NCBI GenBank assembly: GCA_002269645.1
Contig: NIVC01000733.1
Span: forward strand, 62,001 to 126,000
Direction of reading: 5' to 3'
Origin: Macrostomum lignano
Taxonomy: Eukaryota
Length of the DNA stretch: 64,000 bases
Shown: positions 61,351-63,342 of the stretch, one piece after another
Layout: each line of letters begins with the position of its first letter
Position numbering within the stretch: position 1 is the first letter of the stretch
Position numbers and translations under genes: made by a program
The notes under the pieces: generated by a model
The model's database searches: none
What the model was told of the DNA's origin: nothing
The model's input: the letters and a program-made list of their open reading frames with translations, nothing else

Positions 61351-61640
61351 TGCCCGTTATTTCTCACTCTCATCTCCCCAGCTTCCTTCGATACTTCCTT
61401 AACGAAACCGTCAGAATTTTCCTTTGATCTTCAGATTTTTTCGATCCGTTTTTTTCCGGATCGAATTTCGCTCGTTTAGTTAAATAGTTTTCTTTCTTAA
61501 CGTCATTCCACCTGATCTTATAATCTCCTAACTGAATCCTTTTATCGTATCTGATTTCGTTTTTTGAGTCTTCTTCTTTGAATCCTCTTCCGAGCAAAGA
61601 CAGGCAACAAAGAGAAAAAAGATAAATCGCTGTTTCTGAT

Positions 61641-61661
61641 GTCTTTTTTTCTGTACTGCAG
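61641..61661 (+). promoter_or_regulatory. Unpaired 3' splice acceptor in front of MTRFR (candidate SL trans-splice site)
   Basis: gtctttttttctgtactgcag|AGC ACT AAA; in-frame TAA at 61623 with no ATG between it and the acceptor. Confidence 0.65.
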
Positions 61662-63342
61662 AGCACTAAAATTCGAGCCGTTAGCCTCGCCGCAGGCGGC
61701 AGCTGGACTAGCTTCATCATCGCTACTAGGCGGAGCTTAACAACCCACGGTGTTGTAGCAACTCGATTCGGGCATCATCATCAGCAGCATCTGCTGCAGC
61801 GCTGCTCGCTCAGCTCTGCCTCGCGTAGAAACCGGCCGAGCTATCCTGCGCTGGATGAGTCCGCTATTCGAGAGCAGTTTGTGAGCGGCTCCGGCCCCGG
61901 CGGGCAGAAGATTAACAAGACTCAGAATAAGGTGAAATTCTATATTGTAGAGACTGTAGCCTGTGTAGGCGTAGCTTATATATCCAATTCTACAGACAGA
62001 CAGACAGACAGACAGACAGACAGACAGACAGACAGACAGACAGACAGACAGACAGACAGACAGACAGACAGAAAGACAGACAGACAGACAGACAGACAGA
62101 CAGACAGACAGACAGACAGACAGACAGACAGACAGACAGACAGACAGACAGACAGATAGACAAGACAGACAGACAGACAGACAGACAAGACAGACAGACA
62201 GACAGACAGACAGACAGACAGAAAGACAGACAGACAGACAGACAGACAGACAGACAGACAGACAGACAGACAGACAGACAGATAGACAGACAGACAGACA
62301 GACAGACAGACAGACAGACAGACAGACAGACAGACAGACAGACAGACAGACAGACAGACAGACAGACAGACAGAAAGACAGACAGACAGACAGACAGACA
62401 GACAGACAGACAGACAGACAGACAAGACAGACAGACAAGACAGACAGACAGACAGACAGACAAGACAGACAGACAGACAGACAGAGAGACAGACAGACAG
62501 ACAGACAGACAGACAGACAGACAGACCAGACAAGACAGACAGACAGACAGACAGACAGACTGACAGACAAGACAGACAGACAGACAGACAGAGAGACAGA
62601 CAGATAGACAGATAGACAGACAGACAGACAGACAAGACAGATAGACAGACAGACAGACAGACAGACCAGACAAGACAGACAGACAGACAGACAAGACAGA
62701 TAGACAGACAGACAGGCAGACAGATAGACAGACAGACAGACAGGCAGACAGACAGACAGACACTAAGACAGACAGACAGACAGACAGGTAGATTCAGCAT
62801 CATCTCGTGAACACGTTTCCCAGTGTAACCATATCTCAAGTCGGTGCTTCTCTTTGTTTAAATCTATCTAATCTCGTTCCTTTCATCCATTCTCTGATCG
62901 ACTTAACTATCATAATCTAACCTACGTAGTGACATCTATCCTCATTTCTTCTCATCTACTCTCTACTCCCCTTCTCATCTACTCTCATCAATTCTCATAT
63001 AATATGCTCTCTTCCCAGGTAGTCCTGACCCACCTGCCCACGGGCACTGTGGTGCACTGCCAGGAAACCAGGTCCCTACACGAGAATCGTCAAATCGCCC
63101 GTCGCCGCCTTCAAGAGAAGCTGGATGTTCTCATCAACGGCGAACACGCCGCCTCGTTGGTGGCCGATCGAGAGCGTCGAGCTCGGGACCGCTACGAGCA
63201 CGGCAGGAGCGTGTCCCGGCTGCAGATGAAATTGCGGCTCAAAGAGGAGCTCGCTAATCGGCTGCCGCAGCGGCTGGAGACGCCTCCGAGCAGGGACGAG
63301 GGTGGCGACGCTGATGCTAATAATGGTACTGATGATCGATGA
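61662..63342 (+). CDS. MTRFR: Mitochondrial translation release factor in rescue (C12orf65/MTRFR-like), 2 exons, ~198 aa; initiator Met not encoded in the first exon
   Basis: join(61662-61931, 63019-63342). [63 protein letters not shown] is a GGQ class-I release-factor domain with a basic C-tail and no codon-recognition domain. The N-terminal ~60 aa are Ser/Arg/Ala-rich and lack acidic residues (presequence-like). Confidence 0.88.
61991..62788. repeat. (GACA)n microsatellite in the MTRFR intron
   Basis: Same motif as the (CTGT)n tracts but in the opposite orientation relative to transcription. Confidence 0.96.

Follow-up and report, generated by a model that had tools for sequence, protein, structure and literature searches.

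The stretch of DNA analysed here, referred to below as the window, covers 64 kb of the genome of the free-living macrostomid flatworm Macrostomum lignano (NIVC01000733.1:62001-126000, assembly Mlig_3_7). All coordinates are positions in this window, the genes with a stated strand lie on the forward (+) strand, and a slash within a sequence or a pair of positions marks a splice site. Near the end of the window lies a two-exon gene which, judged by homology, encodes MTRFR (C12orf65), the GGQ factor of mitoribosome rescue, and whose start codon is very probably supplied by the spliced leader (SL) of this species. Exon 1 (61662..61931; 270 nt, 90 codons) is read in phase 0 and contains no in-frame ATG; its translation begins STKIRAVSL and comprises a presequence-like N-terminus and the GGQ motif, and its donor reads AAG/gtgaaa at 61931/61932. 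Intron 1 (61932..63018, GT...AG) consists mostly of an (ACAG)n microsatellite at 61992-62787, and the coding part of exon 2 (63019..63342) completes the RF-1 domain and adds a basic helix and an acidic tail before the stop codon TGA at 63340-63342. Direct reading and a script both give a spliced frame of 197 codons ending in this TGA. Immediately ahead of exon 1 stand a polypyrimidine tract and a 3' splice acceptor, gtctttttttctgtactgcag/ (61641..61661), which is the proposed site of SL trans-splicing; in a direct reading of 59000-64000 the tract is pyrimidine-rich and reads ...tctgtactgcag/. The region between the end of a tandem array (61360) and this acceptor (61361..61661) is the presumed promoter and outron. 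A tentative candidate polyadenylation signal, AATAAA at 63845..63850, is seen in the sequence about 500 nt past the stop codon.

The identity of the gene was assessed by searching its protein, 198 residues long when the SL methionine is counted, against solved structures. The best match was human C12orf65/MTRFR (7a5h_C; 97 bits, E 9.8e-27, residues 53-167 against 43-157) and the second C12orf65 structure was that of the mouse homologue (2rsm). The C12orf65 chains scored 97 and 86 bits, whereas all chains of RF1, RF2, mtRF1 and RF-H remained at or below 45 bits, and ICT1/MRPL58 was absent from the solved-structure matches at E <= 0.001. PF00472 is the sole domain recorded on the GenBank copies of the protein, with no codon-recognition domain PF03462, and the GPGGQ motif places GGQ at residues 81-83 when the SL methionine is residue 1. 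The first-pass annotation of this DNA had named the gene MTRFR, and on these scores that identity holds. In human and mouse, MTRFR (C12orf65, mtRF-R) is a GGQ factor that rescues split mitoribosomal large subunits (PDB 7a5h chain C; 2rsm). The flatworm protein is like its mammalian counterparts in the GGQ motif, in possessing the RF-1 domain only, without codon-recognition domains, in the basic C-terminal helix and in the N-terminal extension, whose length ahead of the common alignment start is similar to that of human C12orf65. It differs in a His/Gln-rich stretch of the presequence and in the acidic C-terminal end, its function and localisation being assigned by homology, and the mammalian gene, unlike this one, carries its own ATG.

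Residues 1-65, SL methionine included, contain nine Lys/Arg, five His and 16 Ser/Thr and no Asp/Glu; acidic residues begin with D66, immediately ahead of the conserved domain. An N-terminus that is basic and free of acidic residues, as had been proposed, is thus present, and the first ~50-65 residues are probably a mitochondrial import presequence. The first-pass annotation had gone further and suggested that SL-supplied initiation defines organelle targeting, which is an overstatement: the SL contributes the methionine only, and the presequence is encoded by exon 1. What SL-supplied initiation decides is whether the MTRFR protein is made at all, not where it is targeted.

The absence of a start codon is a property of the whole 5' part of the gene. 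The nearest in-frame stop upstream of the acceptor is the TAA at 61623-61625, 13 codons away, exactly where it had been reported, and a script finds no in-frame ATG between this stop and the acceptor. Once spliced, the coding sequence has a single in-frame ATG, at codon 160, beyond the GGQ domain, in agreement with the earlier statement that no methionine precedes the end of that domain; likewise, direct reading and the script bear out an acceptor opening in phase 0 into the GGQ exon. The assertion that there is no ATG at all between the TAA and the acceptor stands for in-frame ATGs and fails for others, since an out-of-frame ATG is found at 61639-61641 and opens a 33-codon open reading frame (ORF). 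Another in-frame ATG occurs inside the intron at 63004-63006, five codons before exon 2 (MLSSQ/VVLTH...); a start there, through intron retention or internal initiation, would give a protein without the GGQ motif and is most likely meaningless.

A start codon could be donated from outside the gene. Macrostomum lignano uses a single 35-nt SL, CGGTCTCTTACTGCGAAGACTCAATTTATTGCATG, with the 3' end ...TTGCATG, and the top enriched motif at its trans-splice acceptors is [T/C]TNCAG (PMC8629364). Between 11% and 39% of M. lignano genes have been estimated to undergo SL trans-splicing (PMC8629364, PMC10468722, PMC5730564), and the terminal ATG of Macrostomum SLs has been remarked on as a start codon (PMC10468722). 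The MTRFR acceptor, CTGCAG/ (61656-61661), fits the published motif. Joined at 61661/61662, the SL would yield ...UUGC AUG AGC ACU AAA, that is M-S-T-K, in frame with the RF domain, and phase 0 is the only phase at this acceptor that keeps the RF frame open. An SL RNA gene was not found within the window itself, either by an Rfam scan, which gave no matches at gathering thresholds, or by a search for the SL pattern with up to three mismatches.

The genome holds three copies of this gene, which we compared as L001 (the window copy, where position x in L001 corresponds to window position x + 51664), L002 and L003. The top cluster of the protein search consisted of three M. lignano GenBank proteins, one of which (P0091; PAA77602.1, BOX15_Mlig023541g1, labelled "partial") shows, from codon 2 onward, no difference from the window protein. 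The Mlig_3_7 annotation was based on RNA-seq; transcripts were cut where SL reads marked trans-splice sites, and ORFs were called by TransDecoder (PMC5730564). Each of the three copies is annotated with a 5'-partial coding region, which opens 3 nt past the acceptor in the window copy and 12 nt past it in L002 and L003; an older UniProt model (P0070) starts exactly at the S of STKIR. Transcripts underlying such models must begin at or just after the acceptor, because a transcript reaching back past the TAA would contain no ATG for an ORF call of this kind. The three copies do not differ in the acceptor CTGCAG, the in-frame TAA or the ATG-less frame (alignment A1), and the alignment spanning the upstream region 61361..61661 has a mean column identity of 97%. 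One base of the pyrimidine tract differs, being T in the window copy and C in L002 and L003, and the out-of-frame ATG at 61639-61641 is CTG in both of the other copies. Within the RF domain the window copy shows no nonsynonymous and two synonymous differences from each other copy; amino-acid changes between copies fall mostly in the presequence and the tail, and the overall pN/pS is ~0.42. This substitution pattern, read from small counts, points to a translated gene, and the conservation of acceptor, TAA and ATG-less frame in three copies together with the clear homology is, as far as sequence comparison goes, more than chance.

Based on these observations we propose that the start codon of MTRFR is the AUG of the SL, joined at 61661/61662, and we give this reading a probability of roughly 85%. 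It is the best explanation because the acceptor motif, the ATG at the 3' end of the SL, the frame, the partial gene models and the conservation across three copies agree. In the proposed sequence of events, transcription of the MTRFR pre-mRNA would begin upstream of 61661, within ~300 nt of it or with MTRFR as the downstream gene of a unit shared with its upstream neighbour TMEM50; the spliceosome would then join the 35-nt SL (...UUGCAUG) to 61661/61662 and the outron with its in-frame UAA would be discarded. The predicted in-frame junction is SL-AGCACTAAAATTCG, with the spanning sequence ATTTATTGCATGAGCACTAAAATTCGAGCC. The last three bases of the SL would serve as the initiation codon, with G at -3 and A at +4, and the remaining 32-nt leader would make up the whole 5' untranslated region. 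The predicted product is a 198-residue protein, MSTKIR..., with a Ser/Thr-rich, basic and acid-free N-terminus followed by the GGQ peptidyl-tRNA hydrolase domain and a basic tail. That trans-splicing uses this AG, that this mRNA uses the SL AUG and that the product is imported into mitochondria are all things we infer. The SL-supplied methionine claimed in the first-pass annotation is therefore supported, given that the published SL ends in ATG, that the acceptor fits the motif and is in frame, and that no other in-frame ATG occurs before codon 160.

Several points weigh against this interpretation. The coding start annotated for the window copy is 61665 and not 61662, which places the annotated transcript 5' end at 61663-61665, and the annotated 5' ends differ between copies (+3 versus +12), so that they were not set by one sharp peak of SL reads. 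In an exact look-up among 15 billion proteins, neither the methionine-initiated protein (three copies) nor the Met-less and SL-read-through forms (VSYCEDSIYCM...) found a match. A hydrophobic-moment scan of the N-terminus gave modest, unremarkable values, and mitochondrial import is judged from composition and homology only. Experimental proof that the SL AUG is used comes from other flatworms, with none for M. lignano in the literature searched. As for the annotated 5' ends, we take them as approximate limits of SL-trimmed or SL-unmapped coverage because they differ between sequence-identical copies, and because the models of TMEM50 scatter alike (+2 or +5). A transcription start downstream of 61662 could fit annotated ends of +1 to +12, but these ends differ between identical copies. 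Exact look-ups of the HIG1 gene of the window (37784-38185, 37751-38185), made for calibrating annotated 5' ends, returned no record.

The annotated start at 61665 would also fit a different junction, at the AG of 61662-61663 (cagAG/CAC). The exon would then begin at 61664 and the SL AUG would be out of frame (AUG CAC UAA, M-H-stop), leaving the mRNA unproductive or dependent on a non-AUG start; the predicted junction (61663/61664) is SL-CACTAAAA, that is ...TTGCATG/AGCACT, with the spanning sequence ATTTATTGCATGCACTAAAATTCGAGCC. In a transcript starting at 61663-61665, the codon at 61665 would be the first in frame, and the neighbouring TMEM50 is likewise annotated from the first in-frame codon past its junction. 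Yet an offset of 2 nt lies within the noise of the annotation in both genes, and CTGCAG fits the published acceptor motif whereas GCAGAG does not. GAG is the least favoured splice acceptor, and the first AG after a pyrimidine tract is normally the one used. A junction here would moreover leave no in-frame AUG at all for an ORF that is intact and whose RF domain shows no nonsynonymous change across three copies, and we consider it improbable. Slightly less credit still is due to a conventional 5' exon with its own ATG, ending in phase 0 and cis-spliced to the acceptor at 61661 so that no SL is needed. The acceptor is a normal 3' splice site, cis- and trans-splicing in M. lignano share acceptors in principle, and a phase-0 candidate of 18 codons runs from the ATG at 59436 to 59489/GTAACA. 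In the 4118-nt gap upstream, however, only two phase-0 candidates of the form ATG.../GT are present, and their donors, GTAACA and GTTATT, depart from the GT[G/A]AG consensus. These two candidates with poor donors are not conserved: L003 has AAG in place of the 59436 ATG, and L002 has lost 5 nt and 3 nt, which shifts the frame and removes the GTGAG donor (alignment A3). That donor belongs to the ATGG/GTGAG at 59436-59444 singled out in the first-pass annotation, which is indeed there and which, spliced to the acceptor, reads ATG GAG CAC TAA (M-E-H-stop). The RNA-seq-guided models of the three copies, marked partial, contain no such 5' exon.

Of a similarly low order is the prospect that the mRNA is not trans-spliced and that translation begins at a near-cognate codon, either in an unspliced leader (the in-frame CTG at 61656 or ATC at 61626) or inside exon 1. 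The frame is open from 61626, the CTG lies two codons before the acceptor, and an older model (P0002) begins VLQSTKIR and thus reads through the acceptor. Against this, the codons concerned fall within a textbook polypyrimidine tract with its acceptor, P0002 comes from a draft assembly and is frameshifted, the other transcript models stop at the acceptor, and in a species where an estimated 11% to 39% of genes are trans-spliced the SL offers a perfect in-frame AUG. The missing ATG might finally reflect loss of function in a decaying, untranslated copy, as could be imagined in a recent polyploid with many redundant copies (PMC5730564, PMC10468722), and the N- and C-terminal parts carry many nonsynonymous changes. 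This we regard as scarcely credible: in all three copies the 197-codon frame is intact, both splice sites are kept and the RF domain is unchanged, and the protein searches gave no other MTRFR-type gene with an ATG among their M. lignano matches.

Initiation at an SL AUG is a mechanism already established in flatworms since 2006, and MTRFR is a further ordinary case of it. Cheng et al. (2006), as cited in later papers (PMC9851317, PMC12582326, PMC7653826, PMC3510090), showed that the flatworm SL AUG acts as initiator methionine. In Schistosoma mansoni the SL AUG is in frame in 28% of trans-spliced transcripts and is required by more than 40 cDNAs (PMC9851317), in Echinococcus granulosus the SL ATG is needed for 143 of 187 SL-bearing clusters to be full-length (PMC3510090), and the SLs of Hymenolepis microstoma end in ATG, considered a trait conserved among the SLs of flatworms and a source of start codons (PMC7653826). 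The MTRFR gene shares with these mRNAs an SL exon ending in AUG, an acceptor placed in frame at the ORF's first codon, the lack of any other usable AUG, and an N-terminus that matches orthologues only with the SL methionine. It is unlike them in coming from a free-living macrostomid and in that its junction is deduced from the genome and gene models. A partial parallel is found in trypanosomes, where, according to Nilsson et al. (2010) as cited in PMC9851317, the choice of trans-splice acceptor sets the N-terminus and hence the targeting signal; the trypanosome SL has no AUG and the alternatives use internal AUGs, whereas MTRFR in M. lignano has a single acceptor and the SL supplies the AUG. 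Evidence for alternative MTRFR isoforms was not found. The phytochelatin synthase of S. mansoni was considered as a precedent for SL-dependent mitochondrial targeting and rejected, as its paper reports no trans-splicing. The literature searched held no paper cataloguing SL-AUG-dependent M. lignano genes or naming this MTRFR gene, and none mentioning the gene ids Mlig023541, Mlig015902 or Mlig022593.

The first-pass annotation had counted MTRFR as the second of two independent ATG-less cases in the window; the first is probably GART, the trifunctional purine synthesis gene, and this case checks out. GART exon 1 (window 23950-24400, + strand) starts at 23973 directly after attattcTAG/, in which the TAG is both in-frame stop and acceptor, and the exon contains no ATG. 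The SL ATG followed by GCT ACG GTC... would be in frame, and methionine plus exon matches bacterial PurD and human GART at their extreme N-terminus. A homologue search with GART exon 1 gave nothing at E <= 1e-30, a threshold too strict for matches beyond the species' own protein, and M. lignano's own GART protein entry seems not to contain exon 1. Two of the ~8 genes of the window (MTRFR and GART) thus have no start codon of their own, MTRFR in all three copies, and two ATG-less genes within 64 kb support SL-AUG dependence as routine in M. lignano.

Under the SL-AUG reading, a nuclear gene for a mitochondrial protein would be untranslatable without trans-splicing. The three MTRFR entries marked "partial" in GenBank are probably complete once the SL methionine is added, and the flag probably reflects a trimmed SL ATG and not incomplete genes; annotation pipelines that trim the whole SL including its ATG would systematically produce such models. 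No new mechanism is involved, and what the gene adds is an example from a free-living macrostomid to one documented mainly in parasitic flatworms. A broader interpretation, which we hold tentatively and at somewhat less than even odds, is that SL-AUG dependence is common in M. lignano and that the ATG-less MTRFR is possibly the downstream gene of a repeat-expanded TMEM50-MTRFR operon. If this is true, a large share of the "partial" M. lignano proteins in GenBank would be complete with the SL methionine, and housekeeping expression, mitoribosome rescue included, would be strictly gated by trans-splicing.

The upstream neighbour in question, TMEM50/UPF0220 (57016..57543, +), is a single-exon gene with a 5'-partial annotation and its own acceptor, ttgcag/, ending at 57013. 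From its stop to the MTRFR acceptor (57544-61661) there are 4118 nt, of which 2745 nt belong to three tandem arrays: a 23-mer at 57826-59067, a 30-mer at 59541-60577 and a 23-mer at 60895-61360. Once the repeats are discounted, the distance comes near the 1-kb threshold applied to operons of M. lignano (PMC8629364), and for this reason the two genes may form a repeat-expanded operon. All three copies keep this gene order, and the two genes are fused in an old model (P0004). In the window copy of TMEM50 the acceptor reads caaTTGCAG/CCCTAA, so that the SL AUG would open a two-codon upstream ORF (AUG CCC UAA) and the real start is the ATG at 57058; across copies the TMEM50 models start at +2 or +5 from the junction (alignment A2). 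In L002 (about 5430-5440) and L003 (about 4932-4942) the corresponding sequence is caaTTGATG/CCCTAA, with a genomic ATG replacing the AG where the SL ATG would sit, which may have arisen by cDNA-mediated conversion or retro-copying, or by chance.

Repeats also mark the surroundings and the intron of MTRFR. The 23-bp unit CTCTAATCCACCCTGAGAATCGG of the array at 57826-59067 recurs at 63960-64000, downstream of the gene, and MTRFR is thus flanked on both sides by copies of one satellite family. Its intron 1 measures 1087, 967 and 1263 nt in the three genomic copies, and the (ACAG)n array is the main source of this variation in length (967 to 1263 nt). Microsatellites of the (ACAG)n/(CTGT)n type, several hundred bases long, fill the introns of several genes of the window (e.g., 28600-29300, 44400-44800 and 50150-50700), and in a bacterial-style ORF list they yield long spurious ORFs with runs of LSVC. 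The same segment of a Rab-like GTPase is encoded twice, at 44287-45052 and 50098-50840 (+), ~5.8 kb apart, with an N-terminal exon near 40975-41120; each of the two exons is followed by a (CTGT)n-rich intron, and the repeat suggests that a local tandem duplication took place or that an exon block was duplicated.

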